This document shows positions 23,373 to 39,150 of a stretch of DNA of 64,000 nt, piece by piece (position 1 is the stretch's first letter; every line of letters begins with the position of its first letter). The notes below the pieces were generated by a model. That model was not told the origin of the DNA, made no database searches, and saw nothing but the letters and a program-made list of their open reading frames with translations. The translations under genes and the position numbers were made by a program. This stretch comes from Piromyces finnis finn. Its lineage: Eukaryota; Fungi; Neocallimastigomycota. The stretch covers positions 310,001 to 374,000 of the forward strand of contig MCFH01000005.1 of assembly GCA_002104945.1 (NCBI GenBank), read 5' to 3'.

Positions 23373-24182
23373 CTATTTATTTTTGAAACTATTTCTATTA
23401 CTGAGATTACCAAAGAAGCTAATTGAACTACTACTGCTATTATTACTATTGCTTTCTATACTATCAATTATCGTCATGTCATCCTTATGCTTTTCTTCTA
23501 ATTTTTTAAGACATGCATAAAATGGTAATACTGTAATTGAAAAAATTACAGAAATTATAATTAGATATGTTACAATATATGATAATGAATTTGTACCAAA
23601 GATATATATAGTTTTTTCAGTTGGACATAAACTTCCATCAATTGACCAACAATAGTATTTATAATTACTAAAAGTTTGAATTAATGCAAGTATTGGAAAT
23701 CCAATAAATAAAGTTTTTGGTAATTTATATGCGTATAGTGTTTGAAAAATATATAAGAAACTGTAAGTAATATATAAGAAAAAGAAAAATTGATTACTAC
23801 CGCCCCCAAAGGTCCAAATAATAGAATAAAATAGATATAGTAATAATGCATTACCGCATATTGCATTTTCAAAGTAAAGTAATAATGCAGAATGAAGCAT
23901 CATAAGAAGATGATGTTCTACGATATTAAAATCTTTGTGTATCATATTTGTAAATGTAATTTCCCAATAAAACAAGACAATTTGCAGTATTAACATAATT
24001 TTAATTTGGTAAACAGCGCCTGATTGTATGATTTTACGAGAAGGCCACATATATTTATTTATATAACATGAGCCAAGAGCTATAATTAATTGGATTAAAA
24101 ATATCCAATTAATGTATTGATTCCATTTTTTTGGAAATTGTGTACTATCAGACAAGTTGTTTAAAATTTCCCAAAAACCCAT
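23373..24182 (-). CDS. Intronless multipass membrane protein (269 aa), possibly TLC (TRAM/LAG1/CLN8)-like
   Basis: ATG-started ORF with roughly 6-7 hydrophobic segments and an HH motif (NIVEHHLLMMLH). The family assignment is weak. Confidence 0.6.
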   Translation of the reverse strand: MGFWEILNNLSDSTQFPKKWNQYINWIFLIQLIIALGSCYINKYMWPSRKIIQSGAVYQIKIMLILQIVLFYWEITFTNMIHKDFNIVEHHLLMMLHSALLLYFENAICGNALLLYLFYSIIWTFGGGSNQFFFFLYITYSFLYIFQTLYAYKLPKTLFIGFPILALIQTFSNYKYYCWSIDGSLCPTEKTIYIFGTNSLSYIVTYLIIISVIFSITVLPFYACLKKLEEKHKDDMTIIDSIESNSNNSSSSSISFFGNLSNRNSFKNK

Positions 24183-24677
24183 TTTATTTTTATTTAAATA
24201 ATATAATCCCTGAATAGTATTTAAAGATTTTTTTTCCCTCTTTTTCTCTTTTTTTATTATTATTTTTTTCTTCTTCTTCTTATTATTGTTATATTTGCTT
24301 TATTTTTCTAGTTTTTATTTTATTTCTAATTTTTTATTATAAGTTATCTTCCTTAATTTTTTTTTAATATTATATTGAAATATATAAAGAAATTTTTTTT
24401 TCTTTTTTTTTTTTTTTTTTTTTTTTCAATTATTTTATATTCTTTCTTTTGTAATTAATTATTCATTTAATTATTCATTATATTTCTTTTTATAATTATG
24501 ATTTAACATAAATATTAAAAATTATATGTTTTTTATTTAAAAAAGATTTTTTTAATAGAAAAATTTTTATTATAGGAAAATAGCTCATAATTTAAAGTTT
24601 AATAAATATTTTTTTTTTTTTTAAATATTTATTTATTTAATTTTCGTTTATTAGAGTCTTTAATAAATGAATTAAAA

Positions 24678-27600
24678 ATGAAATTCAATTTTTCCAAAAC
24701 TTACTCAAATAAAAGACTTAATGATAAAGTTTTAAAATTATTAAACAAAAATGTATCGATTAATAATACTTGTTCCGAAGAAAATATAAAAAAAAAAATT
24801 AAATTATGTGATAAACCGAATGAATGTATTTTTTTTATATTTTAAATTGGAAAAAAGTTTTATTATATTTTTAATAATTATTTATATATTAATTTATGCT
24901 AATATTCAGACATTTCATTTAATTAGTTATTTTATTTATAATTTTATTAATGAAATTATTAATGTTTTTGTTAATTATTTAAACAGTAATATATATACTG
25001 AAAAAGGAAGCAAAAGAGAGAGAAATTTCTTTAAAAATTTATTCTTCTTATTGGATTTCTGAGTTATTTTATGAAGAAAAGTTATGGGAAAATTTTTTCA
25101 ATGTATTGGATATCTTGAAGTTAATTTGTATAAAGAATAAAATATAGATTTATTTTTTTTAAATATTAATATTATAATATTAATTTTAATTATTATATAA
25201 TATTAATTTTAAATGTTATAAAAATTAGACAGAAACAATTAATACTATATGTCTTATGATTGACCATTTAGATGAAACACAGAGTATTTCAATAAATATT
25301 TTATATAAAAATATTATTGAAAACATAAGAGATAAATCAATTCAGCATTCTTATTCTTCCAATTATATTAATTCACCGGAGTATAGTAATTATATAATAA
25401 ATGTATTTTTAAATGTCTATCAATTTTATATCGAAATTCCACACATTTTCAATTTTAAGAATTTCATTTTTTTGTGGCTAGAAAATCAAATATCATTATA
25501 TAATTCTTTATTAATCTTATTTACAAGAATTGAAGAACAAATTGAAAAAGATTCATTAAAGCAATCACTCTTAAATGGTATATATAGATATAAAAGTGAA
25601 TGTATTATATATGAATTTTAATTTTATATTGAAATATTATAATAGATATATTATTATATACATTACAAATATTAATAAGTAAACACGAGTTTGATAAAAA
25701 GCAAGAATATATAAAAATTCTATTTGACAATTTAATTAATTATCCCATAAAATTAATACGAGATTTTAAGTAAGTACTATAATTCTGTTTTTTTTTTTTT
25801 TAAAAAATTTTTTTATAGTCATAAATTAATTCACTTTTTTTTTTTTTTAAATGGTTTATATTTATTTAATAAAATAGCAAAGATTTAAATAATAATAATA
25901 CAGTGAAGCTTTTTATTCATCAAATTGTATTAATTTCAATATGTAATCAGAAAATATTATCTATAGAGGAAAAAAAGGATTTTATCATTCATATATGTAA
26001 AAAATTATGTAAAACTTCTAAAAGTAATGCTGAATTTTTTCAGTTAAACAAAAATAAATCTAAAAATAATATAAGCAAAGAAAAAATAATTTTTCCTTTT
26101 AATAAATTATTAGAAATATATTCAATAAGTAATTATTAAAAATATTATATATATTATATATTCCTATTATATAAACAACAATAATAAAAGAGTTTATTTA
26201 TTCAGTTTCGGAATAGCTTAATAATCACAAAAATGTAAAAATAATTTTAGGTGATAATGATGATTATCAAAACTCAAAGAGTTTTAATGATAGAGAGGTG
26301 CTATTTGAAGCCATAATAAAAATATCAAATTCCATAAATTTGGAGGATAATTTTATTCTTAAATTTGTATATGATACTATAGATCAAAAGGAGGTAGATA
26401 TTTTAGGCAAAACCACAATAATTATATTTAGAGTATAAATAATATATATTTATTGTAATGGATAATTTATAAAATCTTAAATATTATTATTTTATTTAAA
26501 GAAAAGTATCAATTATGAATTGATATTTTCCTTGTTAAAAACCTTTATCAGTACAAATATCAAAAATAGTTTAAATAGCGAAAAAATGTTTAATATTATT
26601 AACCAAAAATTTGAAAAGGTGTTAAGTCAAAATATTGAGACTGAAGAAGATTATTTGAATTTCAAAACACTCTTTTATGTTATCATTATTTATTTCATTG
26701 AAAAGAAGAAAAATGGTGAAGAAGATAATGAGTTTGAAATATGGTTTAATGTAAGTAAAGATTGATAATAATATAAATTAATATAATAATAGTTAAATTA
26801 TTACCAATTATAATGATAGAGTAATACAATTATCTTATATTATAATGTTTTAATAGAATACTTTTAGTAAAACGCCTAGTCATTTTCAATGGGTTATAGA
26901 TAATATGAGACCATTTACAAATATGCTATATTTGTTAATATGTTATATTCCAATAGAATGTTCTAAGGTTTATATATATAGTTCAACTTAAAAAATTTCT
27001 AATTGTATTATTTAATATTTATATTTATAATTATTCTTAATTAAATATTAAAGTCTGCATATCATGAATTAAAATCAATGATACCGAATATTAAAACTGA
27101 AGATCAAAAAAGTTTTGTAATTGATTATTGTGAAAATGTAGAAAATAAGTTCAAAGAAATGGGAGTAGGTTTAAAAAATTTAAAATTATTATATCTTTTA
27201 TTAATACTTCATTTATGTAAAATATTAATCGAATAATTTTAACTAAATATTTTATAAATTTATTTAAAGTTTTCATTAACAAATCAAAAGGGAGCGAAAG
27301 GAAATGTTATTGAAAATGAAATTCAAGAATATATTGAGTATTATAATAATAATTTTACTATTTCGAAAAAGTTAATATCAAGAATTTTATTTAAAAATAA
27401 ATGGTACATAAATATGTTTTTACCAAATCTTTTAGATATTGGTAGAATAACTACTCCATCTCAAGTATCTCTAATGAATGATGAAAGAAAAAGGTTCATT
27501 TTAGCATTAAATGAATATGGCGAGATTCAAGAAAAAGCGAGGATTTCTAAATTTTTGTGGTAAACAAAATTATTACTATTATATTATATATTTAAGAATA

Positions 27601-30600
27601 TAATTATATTGTTAATAATTATAATATATATGTGTATATATGATTTAATATAAATTGTAGGAATACATATTTAGAAACCCATTTATCTACAACAGAAGAA
27701 AAGGAAAAAGAAGAAAAAGTAGAAGAAGAAGAAAAAGAAGAAATACCAATTAATGAAAATCAAAAAAATGATGAAAAAAATAAAGAAACAGATAGACAAG
27801 AAGAAGATAACTTTGTTAAAATTAAAGTTATTAAAAATAAAATTAATAAAATATTTGAAGATTTTATTCAATATTTATCAAGTAAAAATATTTCTAAAAT
27901 TAAAATGGGAATTTTCTCAAATAATTCTTCTATCAATAGTTCAAGTAAAAATATAGAAGGTAGCTCGAATTACAATTTAATAGAGTTAAATATTATTGGT
28001 ATGTGTAATAAATTGAAAGGCCTTTTTGATCAATATATCCATTATAAATATAACATGTCAAGAAAATTAGTTCAAGGACAGTCTGTTACTGAAAATTCTT
28101 TTATTATCGGGCAATTGAATATAAATAAATCATACATGTATTATAGAAAGGATGATAAACAACTTTGTTTTTCAAGAACTTTTTCATTTGATGAAATGGA
28201 ATTTGTTGAAAATCTTATTGAACGGTTTCATGAGTTAATTCATTGTGTAACTAATGATACAAATAAAGAATTTGTTAATTTTATCCTTTTTAAAGTTATT
28301 AAACTTCTTTCTAATTATCCTATTATCCACCCTCTCATTTATATAAGATTAATGCTCCTACTCTATGATCAAATTGGAGATATTAATGAAGGATTATGTG
28401 ATAGTTTATCAAGAATAATATCTATAATGTCGTCTATAAATTATGGGTTTCCTGATATACCCATTCTTCATACGAATAAAAGTAATTTAGATGATAATAG
28501 TTTTAATATTGATAAAGGTGATGAAATAGGAAATGATTTTTTAAAAGAATATATAGATGATAATATATATACAATGACTGAAAAAATTAAGCCAATAGAA
28601 GTATTATTGAACCCTTATTTAAATAATTTAATGTCTCTCTATACCAGTAATAAGTTTAATTATAAGGAAGAAAGTATTTTCTTAAGGATTGCTTGTGGTA
28701 TTCTATATTTTATGAAAAGTCAATCAGCATCTATTCATCTTTTATCTCATGATAATGATATTAAATCGTTTAATATTTCTAATATTCAAAATAAAGAAGG
28801 TATGTTTTATAATTTAACCATATATATATATATATTATTTATAACTCTTCTTTATAATTTAAATTTATCATAATAGATACAATTCTTTTTTACTTACCTG
28901 AAGAGCTAATATGTAGATTAGAATATTTAAATCAAAAATTAAAATTTTCATCAACTTATTTGTTCGAAAAAGATGTGAATTTTCTAGTTGATACAAGAAA
29001 CAATATCCAGAATTATATTAACGATAATGATACTGTTGATAATAAAATGTTACTTTATAGTAATATTAAAATTTTGAAGAGTATATTTTCATATTCATCA
29101 TTAAATTTGAATTATAAAGCTATTTCCATAAATCAATGGATCTTTTGGCAATATATGAATTTTAATCAATGGTTAACATTAGAAGAAGAAATGGAATATA
29201 TGAGATCCTTGATATACGGTGTTTTCTTAAATGAAAATTATTCCACAAAAGAAGTTTTTGATTTAGCACAATTTTTATTGTTAGAACTTGTAAAGTTTGA
29301 ATTATTGAATGAGAAAGAGTTAAATGTTAAAGATGATATTTATTGTATTGATAATGAATCAAAATTTTCCAAATTATTATTAAATTTAATTAGTGAGTTA
29401 ATATTAGAAGCATGGGATATTTCTCAATTAAATAATGATGATAATGATTATATTTTTCATTTAAATTGGTTAAATGAATGCTTATCTAATCTGTTAAAGT
29501 TTAGTAAAAAAAGTGTATGTAACTTGTTTATTAATTTTTATACTTTTAAGATATTTATTTATATATAATTAAATAAATTAATTTTATTTTCAACTCTTTT
29601 AATATAATAACATAGCATACTAAAGTAATAAAAAAGTTTATTAACAAATTAGTATTCTTCTCACCACAATTTTTTTTCACAAAAGGTTAAGTACAACATA
29701 TGAATTTTATTAATTATATTAAAAAATCAGAATAAAGGTTAAAATGAAATTATTATCAATAAATTAATAATTTGTTTATATATATATAATTAATATTTTT
29801 ATTATTTTTAGGATTAGAAATTGCAAAAATTAAAAAAGATTATCAAAAAAAAAAAATAATTAGTGAAATTTTTGGTAGTACTATATCATTTATTCAAAAT
29901 TATATTTGTTCTCTTGAAATAATGGATACCTCAAATAGAAATATAGTAGATTTTGTATGGAGAGGGTATAAACAATTTCTTATATCTATTCAAGCAGCAA
30001 ACATTACCCATGAATGCTGCTTTTTAAATGTAAGTTTAAATATTTAAATTTTTATGTTATAATGTTAAATATAAATAGTTTATATTAAATATTGTTATAT
30101 AGATGATTTCAAATAGTTGTCCAAAGTTTATTTGTATGTCAATTATCAATTTCGATGAACTTTTAATATTCAAGAATTTATCACAGAGAAAAAAAGAAAA
30201 AATATTATGTTGTAATCATCATTCAACCAATATCCACTTAATGTTTTGTAATATTAAAAATTTAATAAATCAAATTTTAGAATTTCAACATACAAAAGAT
30301 TTGTAAGTATATTATAAAAACAATAGTATGAAAGTATGTTTTTTAATAAATTTTATTTGGATGTTAATATTTACTAAATACAGGTCATTTATAAAGATTC
30401 CACAATTTATAAAAGAACACCATATAATTTTATCGTCATGTTTATTATTTATAACCTACCAAAAAATATTATTTAATAATAGTAATGAATATAAGAATTA
30501 TTGTTCAAAAATAATATTCTTTCTTACAAAAGAACTGGATTATACCCTAAAACAATTTATTGAAAACAAAGATTCAAAAGAAGAAATAAATTATGATATG

Positions 30601-31962
30601 TCATTTTACATTAATATTATATTAGATATTATTAATATTTCTATATATTATATTTATTATTATAATCAAATAAAAGAGTTGTTAGATTATAAATTTAATG
30701 ATAACAATCCAAAATTTGTTAAAAACTATAGCTTTTTTAAGGATTTGATTGATACGTTGTTAATTTTATATCCTAATATTGTGATTCAAGCTTTTTCTCT
30801 ATATAAAACTTCTAATATTGATAAAAACGAAATTAAAAATTATAATAAAAGTAATGATAAGACTAATGATATTAAAGAAGATAATAAAAAAGATAGTAAT
30901 AATATAAACAAAAATATTAACAAAGAAGAAAAAAATATCTATAATATAAATAATAGAAATAACAGTAATGTTTCTTTTTCAAATTTAATGGTTCATTTTT
31001 ATTATCAAGATAAATGCAAAGAAAAAGAAGTAGATTCAAATAAAATGAAACGAAAAGAAATAATTTTTAAAATAAAGTATAATTTTTTATGGCAGTCAAT
31101 TTATAACCTTTTTCAAACAACAATTGAAATAAATAATTTTTATATTGAATTAAGATTATTTTATTTATTTTGTTTTATATTTAATTCTGATATATTTAAA
31201 CAAGTTATTTCATTAAATCAACAAAAGTATGACAAAAAAACAACAAAACTGGTTATAGATAAATTAATAGAAAATTATTTTTATCTTATTAAATATTATA
31301 GTTATTATCAAAGTACAGCAGATTCAGAAAGTAATGTTAATAACTTATTATTAGAATCTAATTTTTTGAATGAATCTACTTTATTTCAATCTAATACAGT
31401 ATCATTTAAAGAATTATTTAATAGTATTACAGAATTTAAGAATTTACATACAGATAAAATGAATAACTATAAATTATCACCCTTAATTAATATACCAGAA
31501 AAGTCTGTCATCAACATTACTAATATTCTAATTAAATTGATCGAGTATTTTGAATCAAAGAATAAAGTGAAGGAAAAAAAGATAGAAAATAACATCAATA
31601 ATGAAAACTCGGAAAAAACAAAAAATTCTGAATTAGAGACTAATATTGATCAAGATCCTAATAATAATAGTATAAAGAATAATTTTAATACGAATTCAGT
31701 TACTAGTGCTATAAAGAAAACTGAAGAAGTTAAGCAATTACTTAAGCCATACAAAATAGATTTTGAGATATTTAGAATATATACTTCTAATAATATTGAT
31801 ATTATAAAAAAATTTGTTCTTTGGCATAATGATATAAATGATAATGAAGAAAATAAAAATGCAACAAGTCAATTAAATAGTGAAAGTTATTCAGAAAAGT
31901 CTATAAATGATTCATTTTATAAAATAAATATTATGAACTTAAAATCAGGCTTAATAAAATAA
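24678..31962 (+). CDS. FANCA: Multi-exon FANCA-like protein (Fanconi anaemia group A); terminal exon boundaries approximate
   Basis: In-phase GT-AG exons ...-26750, 26857-26967, 27054-27164, 27270-27559, 27661-~28800. They splice to INYELIFSLLKTFI...FEIWFNNTF...MLYLLICYIPIECSK...KSFVIDYCENVENKF...ILFKNKWYINMFLPNLL...DERKRFILAL, and later NFNQWLTLEEE. This matches in order the recalled human FANCA segments VHWQRVLSFVSALV, YADWFKASF, FLSELVPFESPR, RSLLTDYISLAKTRL, IFRRPYYVSHFLPALL, DSRVAFIESL and TYQDWLHLELE. The start ATG at 24678 and inclusion of the 30328-31962 ORF are inferred. Confidence 0.68.
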
Positions 31963-32749
31963 ATTAATATTCAGCTTTCAATTATATTAAATCATTTTTG
32001 GGTTATTAAAAATTAAATTTTTTCAATTTAAGAATTTAAAAAGTCTAAAGGAAAAAAGTTTTTTTTTTTTACTGATATTTGTATAAAAATATTAATTTAA
32101 ATTGAATTTATTAATAAACTATTAATAATATAATAATTATATAATAATTAAATTTAATAAGTGTATTAGGATGTTCTTAAATTTATGGATATAATAATAT
32201 AATAAATTTTAATTTATAAAAATTTATAAAAAAATAAAAAAGAAAAAATATATTATAAAACTAAAACTAATTAGAAAATTACTATAATAACATATTGACA
32301 TTTTTTTATATTTAAATAAAAATTATATATTTCTTATTAATGTAATTTCTGGGTATTTAAAAAAAAAAATTAAATGAAATATAAATATAGATATTCAAAT
32401 CATATTGAAGAAAATGATATTTTAAATATAAAAAACACTAGAATCAATGATAAAAATGATTTAAGACCGTTAATAATTTTTTTTTTTGGGATAAAACAAA
32501 GAGGTTAAAAAAAAGGAAGATGACAAAATTAAAATAAAAAAGGAGAAAAAATAAATGATGGAAAAAATATAAAGATAAAATATATTAATAATTTATAAGA
32601 TCAATTGGAGAAAAGAATAAATTTGTTGATAAAAAGTTGATGGAAAATTAATAAAAATCGGAAATGCTTATTTTATAGAATATGCATTATCATATTTTCC
32701 ATATCCTTGTATTATTTAACAGCTAATGGTGTATTACATATTCATCAAA

Positions 32750-33227
32750 TACATTAATATATCAAGATAAATATAATAAAGAAATAATTTTATATTTAGT
32801 AATTTGATATGATAATATTATCACAGCTAATTGAATGGAATGAATGTCAATTTTCATTTGATTTTGATGTTGCTTTATCATTAATATTTTTTGTAAGTGT
32901 TTATGAATCAAATAATATTTCAGTTTTACATATTGAGTCAGAAAACAAATTAACTGCATTAATGATTGCTTGTCAAACAAAGCAATATATTGTAGTAAAG
33001 ACATTATTTAACAAAAAAGCAGAAGTAAATATTCAAAATAATTTTAGTTATTGTCCTCTTTTGATTGCCATTTAGAACAATGATGAAGAATTAATCAATT
33101 ATATATTAGGGTTATAAATATCAATATTAAGATATATGATACATATGGAAATAATTCTTTAATATTGGCTTGTTTCATCGGAAATGAAAAATGTAAAATA
33201 CTTTTTGAGTTATAAAAGCTTCTTGTT

Positions 33228-33495: not shown

Positions 33496-36400
33496 TCATG
33501 GAACAAAATTATGATCTCCATTGGTTGCGCTGGCCCTCCTGGCCTGTCTTACTGTTTCTTCAGTATTGACGCTCTTGGATGTTGCTTCAAACCTTTTGAA
33601 CATTGTCCATTGCTGGCCAATATTAAAAGGCATGATTTTGGTTAGAAGTTCCGCGGTTACCGTCAAGAATGGTGTTCCTTCGTTAGTACCAGATTGAATC
33701 TGACGCTTACAAAGTTCTTTCCATTCCCTTGAATTGTAATTAATATTGTTAAAACTTCTTCCCCCAAGAAGGAATTTAAATATTTTACTGCACACACTAG
33801 AATAATCATACACATTAATATTCACCGGATTATTAGAACTATTACTATCATTAACTAAATTACTATCTAAATTAGAATTATTATCTTCACTATTGTTATC
33901 ATTACTAATATTATTATTTCTATAACTACTATTGTTACTATTACTATTAATGTTATTGCTATCTCTACTGATATTAACATTTTCATTATTATTGATAGGA
34001 CTATTGGAATTACGTTGACTGAAAAAATTTAGTAGCTGGACTATGGAATCATAATGTTTAATACGGATATCTCTAAATGTTGGACAATCTAATAACCAAT
34101 GTTTAATACTTTGAACACCACACTTGCAACATGGACAGTAGTTAGGACAAACTGGATCAACAAATTTGGCAGCTTTGGCAACTCTAGCATCCAACTTGTA
34201 TCCACTTCTTGCTTTCAAGAGCCAGTAGAAGCCATAGGCAAACTCTGGGTACTCATAACATAATTTGATAAAATCTTTAGTTTCAATAAATTTATTATCA
34301 TCATAATATTGCGCTTTGATTGAATTCCCTTTGAGATCTTTCCAATAAAAGTTTTTGATTGCTTTAACATCTCCATGCTTCTTTAGTTTTTTATCAAGTG
34401 TCCTACTTGATTTGCACCACGTGTATTTTCTAAATTTAGGAATGTAATTGACAAGGTGTGAGATAATACAATTTGAGTTTTTCCATTTGTTAAAACATCT
34501 AACCTGAGTTAAAGCACATTTGGCTGACAATGGAGGAATATTCAAATCTTTTGAGATAGAGTATAAAGATATAAACGATACAGCTTTATGAACTCCGGCA
34601 ACCCATCGTATTCCTTTGTTAACATGCTTCTGAGCAATTCTAGACCTGGCTTTGTTGGATCCAAGTAATGGTGCAAAGTATGAAACTCTGCTAATCACTT
34701 GTGAGTTAAGTAATAGCTTTTTGAAGGGAATAGGAATATTAGAATTTCTTAAGAATTTACTGACTGAAAAAAGTCCTTTCAAAACCTTGTTATTAAGAGC
34801 TTTAATTACTGGTTTAAGGGACAGATTCTTATCAAATGGAACACCAAGATAAGTATAACAATCAGTAGTTGGAATGGGTTGTCCTGCTAAGTAAAATGTT
34901 GGATCTCTCTTGATCTGATTTTCTATTGATTCAGAACGAATCACCATCGTTGAACATTTCTGGATACCAAATTCCATTTCATTATACAAGGCCCATTCAT
35001 TAACTCTTCTTAGCATCTTTTTTAAGCATCCTCTTGTTGGAGCACAAATAACTATATCATCTGCAAAAAGTCCACCACAGCATCGAGTGTCACTTAAACT
35101 GACTCTAAGATCTTCGCACTCTTTAAATATATCATTAATAAAGAGATTAAAGAGAATAGGAGAAAGAGGGCATCCTTGACGGACTCCTTTCTTCACATCA
35201 AAAGATTTCGAGAATTGTCCATCTAATTTGACATTAGCCTTAGATGTTAAATATAAATTTTTGATAAATTGTAAACTCTTACCTCGGATTCCTAAACAAT
35301 CTAATTTATGGAGAATATTACCGATTGGGACTGAATCGTATGCTTTCCTGAGATTTAAAAAGGCCAAATATGTCTCTTTATTATCTAATTGACGTCTACG
35401 GCATATTTCTTGGATTGAAATGAAAAGACTGATACTTTCTTCCTTTTTTCGAAAACCAAATTGTTCAGGTCTAATGAAATTATTCTTTAGACCATATTCT
35501 GAGATTCTAGTGGTGACAATTTTGGAAATCAACTTAATACTATTATTGATAAGTGATATACCTCGATAGTTATCACAATCTGTCAAATCTCCCTTCTTAG
35601 GAATAGAAACAATACTGGATTCATTCCATGAGTTGGGGAAGTCTCCATCCCAAATACGGTTGAATAATTTAAGAATAAAATTTAAACCATGAGCATCATT
35701 ATCTGAAGTGGTATTACCGGAAGAATTATTATCTTTAGCATTATTAGAATCATTACTTGATGGAATTAATGCTTTGTAAAATTCAATTGGAATACCATCT
35801 GGACCTGATGCTTTATAATTTGGAGTAGAGAGGATAGCTGACTTGACTTCATCAATACTAATATCTTGGTTGATATCCCACTCATCAAGCATAGGAAGTG
35901 AAAAACGTTTATTCATTGGTTCTTCATACCAATGCTCCAAATCAAGACTTACACTACTTGGATCTGATGCAAGCTTTTCGAAATGATCATGCCACACTTC
36001 TAGTTGTTCTTCTGTAGCAACAACTAATTCTCCATTTTTATTTTTAATTGGTTGAGCAATAAAGAAAGAATCTTTTCCAATTTTTGCAGTTTTCTTGATC
36101 CATTTCCAGGCCTTCTTAGAATTATGACTCTTCATATACTCACATCCTGTTTTAATCCAATGAAGATATTCTTGTTTCCTAAATTCATTACATCTTTTGT
36201 GGATGTAATCAATGAGCTTACGGTAGATTTTAATTCTTTTAATAAATTCATTTATATCATAAATCCTTTCTTTTTTAAATCTCTTATACAACTTCATTTT
36301 GATTTTTTGAAGATTAAAAATTTGTTGTGAAATATGAAATGAAGACTTTATAACATTATTTGCTGAGGTAATACTGAGCTCGTCTGCAATTGAAAAAGCA

Positions 36401-37992
36401 GTTGAAGTAAACTCTTTGGAAAGTTCATCTGTAGAAACATTAGGATCGTTGAATTTTGCTGAAAGTATTTGGAATTTATTATGACTGAGAATAGATTCCT
36501 TTTCCTCAATACATTTTAATCTATTCCATTTCAGAATTTTCTTAGGAACATTAAAGTCATTAGAAAAATCTTCCATAGGAATAATTTTACCATTAATAAG
36601 AAGTGGCTTATGGTCTGATACAGGATAAAAATTATTTATAAATGATCCTGAGTGAATAAGATCTTTCATCTTCGAATTGATAAGAGCATGGTCAATGTCG
36701 GAAGATTGATCACCTCGAGTCCAAGAGATAGTAGACCCTCTAAGCGGAAGAATTTCCCAATCTCCTAATCCATTAGTTGATAACCAGTTGGATAATTTTA
36801 CTTTAGACATATTAAAATCACCAACAAGAATCGATGGATGGGATGAATGAGTTTGTAACCACAAGCGAACTTCTAACTTTGCATGATCAACATAGATGTT
36901 GTGATGACTATGAGGCATATAAACATTTCCAATCGAGCATTTGAATCTATTCCAGAGACTAAAAGTATAAATAGAAATAATATACTTTCCAGAGAAGTTT
37001 TCAAGTGAGGCTTGACACGAATTGTGAAAACCTAAATATAAACCTCTCATTCCCGGAACTGATTCGTCAGCTTTCTTGAAAAAGTGTCTATAGTTTCGCA
37101 AAGTAACACGACAAGGATAATCTGTATTCGATCCAGAACCATTACCAGTTTCTTGGAAACATAAAAATAATGGTTTGAAAATAGCTGTGAAATAGCTAAT
37201 ACTATCTCTCTTTTCGTGATTCCACCCATTGGTGTTCCAACTAAGACAAAAAGAAAAGTTATCAGGCTTGTTGGATGAGGAAGAATCGTTGCTATTATTA
37301 TTATTATTAAAGTCATCGTTATTAATGGATGATGCATCAGAGGAATAAGTAGAACTATTACTAGATGGCTGTGAAACTGAAGAACTATTAACTATTGAAC
37401 TGTTATCAGAGTTGATAGAACTATTAGAATTAATTGTTGAATGTTGAGATTGAAATTGTGTTTGCTGTAGATCTGGAATATTTTCATGATGGGAAACTTG
37501 TTGAAGATCTTGTTGAAGATCTTGTTGAAGATCGGATTGTTGAAGAGATTGTTGAACTGATTGTTGATGAGATTGTTGAATAGAATGTTGATGTTTATTA
37601 GAAACTAAAATTTTACGTTTGAGAGTGGAAAAAGTGTATTTGTGATTCCTTCTACTACGAGCTGAAAAGGAAATTGAGGTAACTGAAAGTTTCTTCTTTA
37701 ACATGTGTAAGATTTTAATACAATCTTTTGATGAACCATGAACCTTGACTAAGAAAAAGTGATCATTGAAAGTTTGAAAATATTTAACACTAATAACTGA
37801 ATTAAATTTATCTTCTAGAATAACCTCGAGTTTTTCCCATAGCATATTTACTGACCATGATCGAATACCACGGATAAAGAAGGAGCGAATATCATCTAAG
37901 GGGATACCATAAGACCGGGTACCACGTAAATATAACGTATATGGAAAAAAATCTGTCTCTCTCTCTCTTCTTAAAAGTACTGGATAGTACAA
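33496..37992 (-). CDS. Retrotransposon polyprotein: N-terminal extension, APE endonuclease, reverse transcriptase, zf-RVT-like finger
   Basis: APE motifs SWNTNG, FQETG, GDFN, SDH. RT motifs GPDGIP, EQFGFR, KAYDSV, GVRQGCPLSPILFNLF, FADD (35056-35067), YLG. C-terminal CPCCKCGVQSIKHWLLDC (C-x2-C-x8-H-x4-C). 37992 is a TTG; the first in-frame ATG is at 37845. Confidence 0.95.
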   Translation of the reverse strand: MYYPVLLRRERETDFFPYTLYLRGTRSYGIPLDDIRSFFIRGIRSWSVNMLWEKLEVILEDKFNSVISVKYFQTFNDHFFLVKVHGSSKDCIKILHMLKKKLSVTSISFSARSRRNHKYTFSTLKRKILVSNKHQHSIQQSHQQSVQQSLQQSDLQQDLQQDLQQVSHHENIPDLQQTQFQSQHSTINSNSSINSDNSSIVNSSSVSQPSSNSSTYSSDASSINNDDFNNNNNSNDSSSSNKPDNFSFCLSWNTNGWNHEKRDSISYFTAIFKPLFLCFQETGNGSGSNTDYPCRVTLRNYRHFFKKADESVPGMRGLYLGFHNSCQASLENFSGKYIISIYTFSLWNRFKCSIGNVYMPHSHHNIYVDHAKLEVRLWLQTHSSHPSILVGDFNMSKVKLSNWLSTNGLGDWEILPLRGSTISWTRGDQSSDIDHALINSKMKDLIHSGSFINNFYPVSDHKPLLINGKIIPMEDFSNDFNVPKKILKWNRLKCIEEKESILSHNKFQILSAKFNDPNVSTDELSKEFTSTAFSIADELSITSANNVIKSSFHISQQIFNLQKIKMKLYKRFKKERIYDINEFIKRIKIYRKLIDYIHKRCNEFRKQEYLHWIKTGCEYMKSHNSKKAWKWIKKTAKIGKDSFFIAQPIKNKNGELVVATEEQLEVWHDHFEKLASDPSSVSLDLEHWYEEPMNKRFSLPMLDEWDINQDISIDEVKSAILSTPNYKASGPDGIPIEFYKALIPSSNDSNNAKDNNSSGNTTSDNDAHGLNFILKLFNRIWDGDFPNSWNESSIVSIPKKGDLTDCDNYRGISLINNSIKLISKIVTTRISEYGLKNNFIRPEQFGFRKKEESISLFISIQEICRRRQLDNKETYLAFLNLRKAYDSVPIGNILHKLDCLGIRGKSLQFIKNLYLTSKANVKLDGQFSKSFDVKKGVRQGCPLSPILFNLFINDIFKECEDLRVSLSDTRCCGGLFADDIVICAPTRGCLKKMLRRVNEWALYNEMEFGIQKCSTMVIRSESIENQIKRDPTFYLAGQPIPTTDCYTYLGVPFDKNLSLKPVIKALNNKVLKGLFSVSKFLRNSNIPIPFKKLLLNSQVISRVSYFAPLLGSNKARSRIAQKHVNKGIRWVAGVHKAVSFISLYSISKDLNIPPLSAKCALTQVRCFNKWKNSNCIISHLVNYIPKFRKYTWCKSSRTLDKKLKKHGDVKAIKNFYWKDLKGNSIKAQYYDDNKFIETKDFIKLCYEYPEFAYGFYWLLKARSGYKLDARVAKAAKFVDPVCPNYCPCCKCGVQSIKHWLLDCPTFRDIRIKHYDSIVQLLNFFSQRNSNSPINNNENVNISRDSNNINSNSNNSSYRNNNISNDNNSEDNNSNLDSNLVNDSNSSNNPVNINVYDYSSVCSKIFKFLLGGRSFNNINYNSREWKELCKRQIQSGTNEGTPFLTVTAELLTKIMPFNIGQQWTMFKRFEATSKSVNTEETVRQARRASATNGDHNFVP

Positions 37993-38651: not shown

Positions 38652-38870
38652 ATATTAATTAGAAACACTCATTTAAGTAATGATGCTGCTTTATATAATG
38701 CGTGCATGTGAAAATGAAAATTATAATATCGTTAAAATGTTGTTACACAAAAATGTTAATTAATAATTTAAATAACAAAAATTTAATTAAATTAGCTATT
38801 TCGGACCAAAATAATAAATACGAAATTGTGAAAATACTATTAGCTGAAAATGCATTATTAAATATTTAAA
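38652..38870 (+). pseudogene. Decayed ankyrin-repeat gene, 3' part
   Basis: LLYIMRACENENYNIVKMLLHKNVN* and LIKLAISDQNNKYEIVKILLAENA continue the ankyrin pattern after the right TSD. Confidence 0.65.
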
Positions 38871-39150
38871 GCTATTTAAAAATTAATTAAAAAGGATATA
38901 ATAAAATAGAAGAGTTAATTTTAGATGCGAGTAATTTATTATAATTATTGAAACAAAAAAGTATAAATATAATGTAAAACAATAAACATATAAATGTATT
39001 ATTAAAATAGTGATTCAATAAATTTCATTACCAAAAGAAAAATAAATACAAAATACATTTTTGTAATTAATTTTATTAATAATATTACTTTAATTTTATA
39101 TTATGAAATTTAGATTTTAATATAAATATCAATAACAATTAACTAATGCT

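Follow-up and report, generated by a model that had tools for sequence, protein, structure and literature searches.

Whether anaerobic gut fungi (Neocallimastigomycota) retain FANCA, a subunit of the animal Fanconi core complex, is the question raised by a locus at 24678-31962 on the plus strand of a 64,000-nucleotide (nt) stretch of Piromyces finnis DNA. This whole stretch is referred to as the window, and positions are those of the window unless a contig is named. The sequence is identical over the whole gene to contig MCFH01000005.1 of assembly GCA_002104945.1, in agreement with the fungal origin proposed in the initial annotation, which had been drawn up from the letters alone. The locus holds a real multi-exon gene, and the interval that had been given for it is exactly the one borne out by coding pieces, splice junctions and conservation. 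Relatives of the encoded protein turned up in sequence searches in anaerobic gut fungi only. Our reading, made at the level of sequence, is that the gene encodes a highly diverged Neocallimastigomycota orthologue of FANCA (probability about 0.55), and we give roughly even odds to the more specific proposition that this FANCA has diverged so far that only its helical domain is still faintly recognisable.

The gene is a succession of coding pieces that lack stop codons and score positively for codon usage. We model it as 15 exons separated by 14 introns, which measure 68-299 nt and are all GT-AG and frame-keeping. Its coding length of 5,703 nt is divisible by three and corresponds to 1,900 codons plus the stop, with a G+C content of 16-25% in exons and 9-16% in introns. 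For comparison we used Piromyces sp. E2 (L001) and the gut-metagenome contigs L002-5, L006-9, and L010-12 with L014-16; the P. finnis contig is labelled L013, and a window coordinate equals the L013 coordinate plus 19921. The order of exons 3-15 is shared by four other anaerobic-fungus lineages, with 51-79% amino acid (aa) identity, and pairwise ratios of nonsynonymous to synonymous substitution rates (dN/dS) were 0.07-0.32 in every exon tested, from which we conclude that the protein is under purifying selection. With regard to expression, one public run from 2017, guessed to be RNA, contained 0.67 of the sampled 31-mers of 24600-30600. The exon model predicts about 0.65 for a run holding all exons and no introns, a word agreement that is suggestive only and by which this run may be a transcript assembly.

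The FANCA_helical match on exon 10

Six peptide blocks in the translation had been named beforehand as colinear and as resembling FANCA. All six strings were recovered at colinear positions on the plus strand, namely WFNNTF across the exon 7/8 junction (WFN at 26742-26750, NTF at 26857-26865), YIPIECSK in exon 8 (26944-26967), VIDYC in exon 9 (27117-27131), LFKNKWYINMFLPNLL and RKRFILAL in exon 10 (27387-27434 and 27486-27509) and NQWLTLEEE in exon 12 (29164-29190). The blocks of exons 10 and 12 fall on residues that are invariant across five anaerobic-fungus lineages. The resemblance to FANCA was supported for exon 10, which carries the fourth and fifth blocks and matched the Pfam model PF24781 (FANCA_helical; E 0.0011, 19.8 bits), but not for blocks 1-3 and 6, which received no support from Pfam at E ≤ 10 or from sequence searches of the Protein Data Bank (PDB). 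Human FANCA presumably has similar blocks with similar spacing around residues 490-660 and near 985, a lead to which we assign no evidential value; FANCA was not among the matches listed in a short-query PDB search that might have shown such a block alignment.

Pfam was scanned with hmmscan at E ≤ 10 against 24,736 models, the exons being submitted singly and spliced only in the form of two public partial models, P0005 (Piromyces sp. E2, spliced) and P0008 (P. finnis, BCR36DRAFT_366948, 'hypothetical protein'). The PF24781 match lies at 27312..27527 on the plus strand, at residues ~562-633 of ~1,900, and includes both LFKNKWYINMFLPNLL and RKRFILAL; it spans profile positions 5-70 of 82, or about 80% of the profile. 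It was repeated in the orthologues from L001, L002, L006 and L010 at E-values of 0.0055-0.039, with scores of 14.8-19.8 bits over the five lineages. In these five lineages, 62-79% identical over the exon, PF24781 was the top or near-top Pfam match on exon 10, and in the most diverged of them, L006, it was the only one. When the first 30 residues were removed, 13-14 bits stayed in two lineages and the match was lost in three; the bits remaining after trimming indicate that the score is spread along the domain. In about 55 other exon pieces of these loci no FANCA model matched, and noise matches were mostly found at E ≥ 0.01.

Because FANCA had been named in advance for exon 10, the match gains weight. 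An E-value of 0.0011 over 24,736 models amounts to ~4e-8 for one pre-named model and, allowing for inflation, to a chance of ~1e-7 to 1e-6. The match follows ~560 N-terminal residues in a protein of more than 1,400 aa, which is presumably also where FANCA has its helical domain, with the N-terminal domain before it and the C-terminal half behind it.

A match to rve_2, an integrase C-terminal model, was also obtained at the start of exon 10, on the local motif EYIEYYNNN of 16-24 residues (within EIQEYIEYYNNNF, 27312-27356, plus strand). It recurred in orthologues, the E-values on this exon running from 1.9e-4 (L010) to 0.09. A relation to rve_2 was rejected, a local motif of this length being taken for chance.

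Weighing the readings

Several results weigh against an orthologue of FANCA. The score of 19.8 bits is below the PF24781 gathering cut-off of 28 and is not Pfam-grade. The same exon carries the rve_2 motif and several other weak Pfam matches, and since a spurious match reaches a similar or better E-value there, E-values on exon 10 look optimistic and one of ~1e-3 is not decisive alone. No other FANCA Pfam model matched at E ≤ 10 in any of the exons, their orthologues, P0005 or P0008, and neither of the two models deposited at NCBI, including the longer one of 1,195 aa that contains exon 10, has a Pfam match on record. A comparison with the FANCA N-terminal family of Pfam (Fanconi_A_N, PF15865), suggested in the initial annotation, returned no match at E ≤ 10 in exons 1-9 of two lineages, scanned singly as pieces of 35-130 aa, for which the scan has little power. 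PF03511, the model used in a published survey of fungal Fanconi genes (PMC11061109), had no match at E ≤ 10 in exons 11-15 of the window, L001, L002, L006 and L010 or in P0008-P0012, a single-sequence hmmscan result with which extreme divergence is still compatible.

Sequence searches beyond Pfam also weigh against it. Among the chains listed by PDB sequence searches at E ≤ 10, run with single exons and with profiles built from 3-6 lineages, none bore the name FANCA, and phmmer with P0005 against 1.84 billion representatives retrieved only close anaerobic-fungus relatives. AlphaFold2 models from 6- and 10-row alignments had a mean predicted local distance difference test (pLDDT) of 36.5 and 32.1 and were unusable; these low-confidence models are mostly helical, a feature that speaks for the FANCA reading. 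Models from the ESM Atlas reached a pLDDT of 0.35 and 0.37, and their nearest clusters, generic helical-repeat scaffolds in the case of the C-terminal part, were at noise level. Word-index searches with exon 11, exon 15 and profile A7 (the last at E ≤ 10) led to one set of 5-6 anaerobic-fungus lineages only, metagenome scans found nothing, and Rfam and tandem-repeat scans of the locus gave nothing of note.

Much of this is shared by the reading, which we hold to be possible yet doubtful, that the protein is a lineage-specific helical scaffold of anaerobic gut fungi without relation to FANCA, whose PF24781 match and FANCA-like blocks reflect chance likeness between amphipathic helices. The sub-threshold score and the equal or better E-value of a spurious model on the same exon agree with it, as do a protein with no other FANCA domain, no solved FANCA chain listed and no relatives outside the anaerobic-fungus group, and a survey with no FANCA in Neocallimastigomycota or chytrids (PMC11061109). 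It fares worse with the choice of family, since a family named beforehand has turned out to be the best long Pfam match, which is very unlikely by chance, and with the form of the match, which extends over ~80% of the profile where a short motif would not. The match moreover persists in L006, the most diverged lineage, as the sole one, and part of its score survives removal of the first third of the domain, where the rve_2 motif lies. A diverged member of some other helical-repeat family (HEAT, TPR or ARM; for example Integrator subunit 4, DOP1, LAA1 or HEATR5) appears very improbable. An exon 11 profile did give a weak INTS4 stretch (E 0.34), and the nearest Atlas clusters of the C-terminal part were LINES, DOP1, virilizer, Tra1, HEATR5A, Urb2 and LAA1 at 0.79-0.82, but such matches are at noise level in a tool with which one third of shuffled proteins reach a score of 0.8, none of them recurs across searches, and no Pfam repeat family matched at E ≤ 10. 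Of the original assignment to FANCA, it is the choice of family that has gained support, as the best long Pfam match on the named exon in five lineages, while the match itself remains sub-threshold and unaccompanied by any other FANCA domain.

Whether the locus is one gene or two is a question independent of the protein family. NCBI annotates two models, 24678-29817 (1,195 aa) and 29922-31962 (603 aa), both as hypothetical proteins, the outcome that had been forecast for automated pipelines. We consider it unlikely that these are separate genes. Apart from the public annotation itself, a division is favoured by the putative exon 12/13 intron of 299 nt, which exceeds the other introns in length by a factor of two to four. 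The gap between the two models, however, is ~100 nt, and the conservation of exon 13 reaches back ~36 aa from the Met at which the second model begins (29922), with no start codon on the way, this Met being a Leu in lineage L002; on the strength of that upstream conservation and of the Leu in L002 the locus is read as one gene. Exon order is also preserved in L001 and L002-5, as it is for exons 13-15 in L014, and the 15-exon model keeps the reading frame, its length being a multiple of three.

Exon structure and genomic surroundings

All exons lie on the plus strand. The E8/E9, E9/E10 and E10/E11 junctions match the public Piromyces sp. E2 model P0005, and E13/E14 and E14/E15 match the public P. 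finnis model P0008. The remaining junctions were assigned from frame, donor consensus and conservation, those of E1/E2, E2/E3, E3/E4, E6/E7 and E12/E13 being tentative. Exon 1 (24678..24825), placed by coding score and open reading frame (ORF), starts at the ATG at 24678 that also opens the 1,195-aa NCBI model (L013:4757); its 3' boundary is uncertain and no conserved counterpart was found in the upstream DNA of L010. Exon 2 (24987..25102) was placed by frame-1 coding score and GT/AG candidates, has tentative boundaries on both sides and gave no orthologue match. No counterpart of exons 1-2 was detectable in the one contig extending that far.

From exon 3 onwards the pieces have counterparts in the other lineages. 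Exon 3 (25229..25577) has 69% aa identity to L010:1135-1512, with a dN/dS of 0.07; the identities to L010 are 78% for exon 4 (25646..25769), which is followed by the donor GTAAGT at 25770, 74% for exon 5 (25878..26128; dN/dS 0.17) and 60% for exon 6 (26251..26432), which was placed with the help of junction candidates and has a tentative 3' boundary. Exon 7 (26502..26750) ends in ...EIWFN before a GTAAGT donor, and exon 8 (26857..26967) runs from NTF to YIPIECSK and joins exon 9 as in P0005. Exon 9 (27054..27164), with VIDYC, and exon 10 (27270..27559), at residues ~548-643, have junctions as in P0005; exon 10 is 62-79% identical in four other lineages, with a dN/dS of 0.14-0.32. Exon 11 (27661..28799) is 58-70% identical in four lineages plus P0003 (dN/dS 0.16-0.22) and consists of an acidic/lysine-rich, low-complexity start followed by a strongly conserved core at 27866-28798. 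Exon 12 (28877..29512), which holds NQWLTLEEE, is 52-69% identical in four lineages (dN/dS 0.19-0.29), and its donor is placed, with some uncertainty, at 29513 or 29515. Exon 13 (29812..30029) bridges the two NCBI models and contains the Met of the second. Exon 14 (30103..30302) is 64-75% identical in orthologues and has both junctions identical to those of P0008. Exon 15 with the stop (30384..31962) is 51-63% identical in three lineages (dN/dS 0.21-0.30) and carries two N/K-rich low-complexity inserts; P0008 splices out one segment of it, KYDKKTTKL...YLIKYYS, in which the orthologues show no variation. Exons 11, 12 and 15 had no match in Pfam or the PDB.

Two contigs depart from this arrangement. 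In L006:2797-4914, exons 13-15 could not be located beyond exon 12, and minus-strand ORFs of 171 and 503 aa are present instead; either the locus has been rearranged or the contig is an assembly chimera. L017, a 1.8-kb metagenome contig, holds the second half of exon 15 of a diverged orthologue (47% identity) between two stretches of unrelated sequence, of which the 3' one has a far higher G+C content, and is probably a chimeric assembly.

The window has a G+C content of 16-26% outside a non-LTR retrotransposon (LINE) at 33496-37992 on the minus strand, which has endonuclease and reverse-transcriptase domains; it also holds an RNF213-like giant ORF and a giant coiled-coil ORF. An origin in Plasmodium or Dictyostelium, to which the high AT content and the giant ORFs had pointed, was rejected on the grounds of the identity to P. 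finnis. Upstream of the gene, in divergent orientation, a minus-strand gene at 23373-24182 encodes a 269-aa hydrophobic protein, with no Pfam match and no family in the reference annotation, that is probably a multi-pass membrane protein. Downstream, the syntenic neighbour in L014 is an intact gene for a 1,516-aa ankyrin-repeat protein (L014:3398-7948). A tblastn search of the window with that protein found P. finnis remnants at 32389-33191 and 38795-38941, which correspond to aa 6-135, 1297-1400 and 1460-1508 only. The LINE sits between the last two of these pieces, and the ankyrin gene of P. finnis looks like one that has shrunk and been disrupted by insertion of the LINE.

Fanconi genes of fungi and comparison with known systems

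Fanconi genes of fungi were surveyed by Barua, Plecha and Muszewska (Sci Rep 2024; PMC11061109), who scanned 183 fungal proteomes, including those of P. finnis, Piromyces sp. E2, Anaeromyces robustus and Neocallimastix californiae. Their FANCA tree places Mucorales, Endogone and Basidiobolus with animals and has no Neocallimastigomycota or chytrids; FANCA, found for instance in Mucor lusitanicus (KAF1798129.1), predates the split between fungi and animals (PMC11061109). For P. finnis the survey lists FANCD2 (ORX59191.1) and FANCI (ORX34875.1 and ORX55468.1), and the presence of this substrate of the pathway favours the FANCA reading. Neocallimastigomycota are missing from its FANCE tree, FANCG is reported to be lacking in every fungus, and UBE2T is stated to be conserved in all fungal lineages (PMC11061109). 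FANCA in early-diverging fungi (Mucoromycota and Basidiobolus) is therefore already published, and FANCA in Neocallimastigomycota is not reported by Barua 2024. The initial suggestion that an early-diverging fungus may keep an animal-type Fanconi core complex accordingly overstated the novelty of the gene, and the connection it drew to aldehyde repair in a fermentative anaerobe is speculative. A split gene model would be reason enough for a proteome scan to miss FANCA in P. finnis.

On the favoured reading, one gene encodes a fast-evolving, mostly alpha-helical scaffold protein of ~1,900 aa, which would be homologous over its whole length to FANCA. By inference from animal FANCA, the protein would belong, as a subunit without catalytic activity, to a reduced Fanconi core complex. 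This complex would aid a FANCL/UBE2T ligase in attaching a single ubiquitin to the FANCD2-FANCI clamp at stalled forks, and this monoubiquitination would start interstrand-crosslink repair. The role in crosslink repair and all of the partners would be assigned by analogy. Genetic tests are hard to carry out in anaerobic gut fungi.

Confirmation would add one more fungal phylum to those retaining FANCA and would correct the reference annotation of P. finnis, in which the gene is split. It would also mean that detection sets a limit to published tables on the presence and absence of Fanconi core subunits in AT-rich early fungi, proteome surveys perhaps under-counting the Fanconi core through split gene models and AT-driven divergence. 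No new kind of biology would follow, given that FANCA in early fungi and FANCD2 and FANCI in P. finnis are already known.

Among known systems, generic alpha-solenoids (INTS4, DOP1/LAA1, HEATR5) are similar to the present protein in helical-repeat composition and size and include its weak Atlas and PDB-profile neighbours; they differ in that these matches are at noise level, with no repeat-family Pfam match. In animals FANCA (human O15360) serves the Fanconi core complex as scaffold of its FANCA-FANCG-FAAP20 module and is likewise large, mostly helical and non-catalytic. Human FANCA has 1,455 aa, whereas the P. finnis protein has ~1,900 aa with low-complexity inserts; it matched none of the remaining FANCA models in Pfam, and the PDB searches listed no solved FANCA chain. 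What it has in common with the animal protein is the sub-threshold helical-profile match, about as far from the N terminus, in a fungus with the FANCD2/FANCI pair (PMC11061109). The survey that has the reported fungal homologues in its FANCA tree gives PF03511/IPR003516 as the accessions for FANCA (PMC11061109), and the present protein is without a PF03511 match. The likeness to these homologues, from Mucorales, Endogone and Basidiobolus, lies in early-diverging fungi keeping FANCA together with FANCD2 and FANCI, a list that the present gene would extend.

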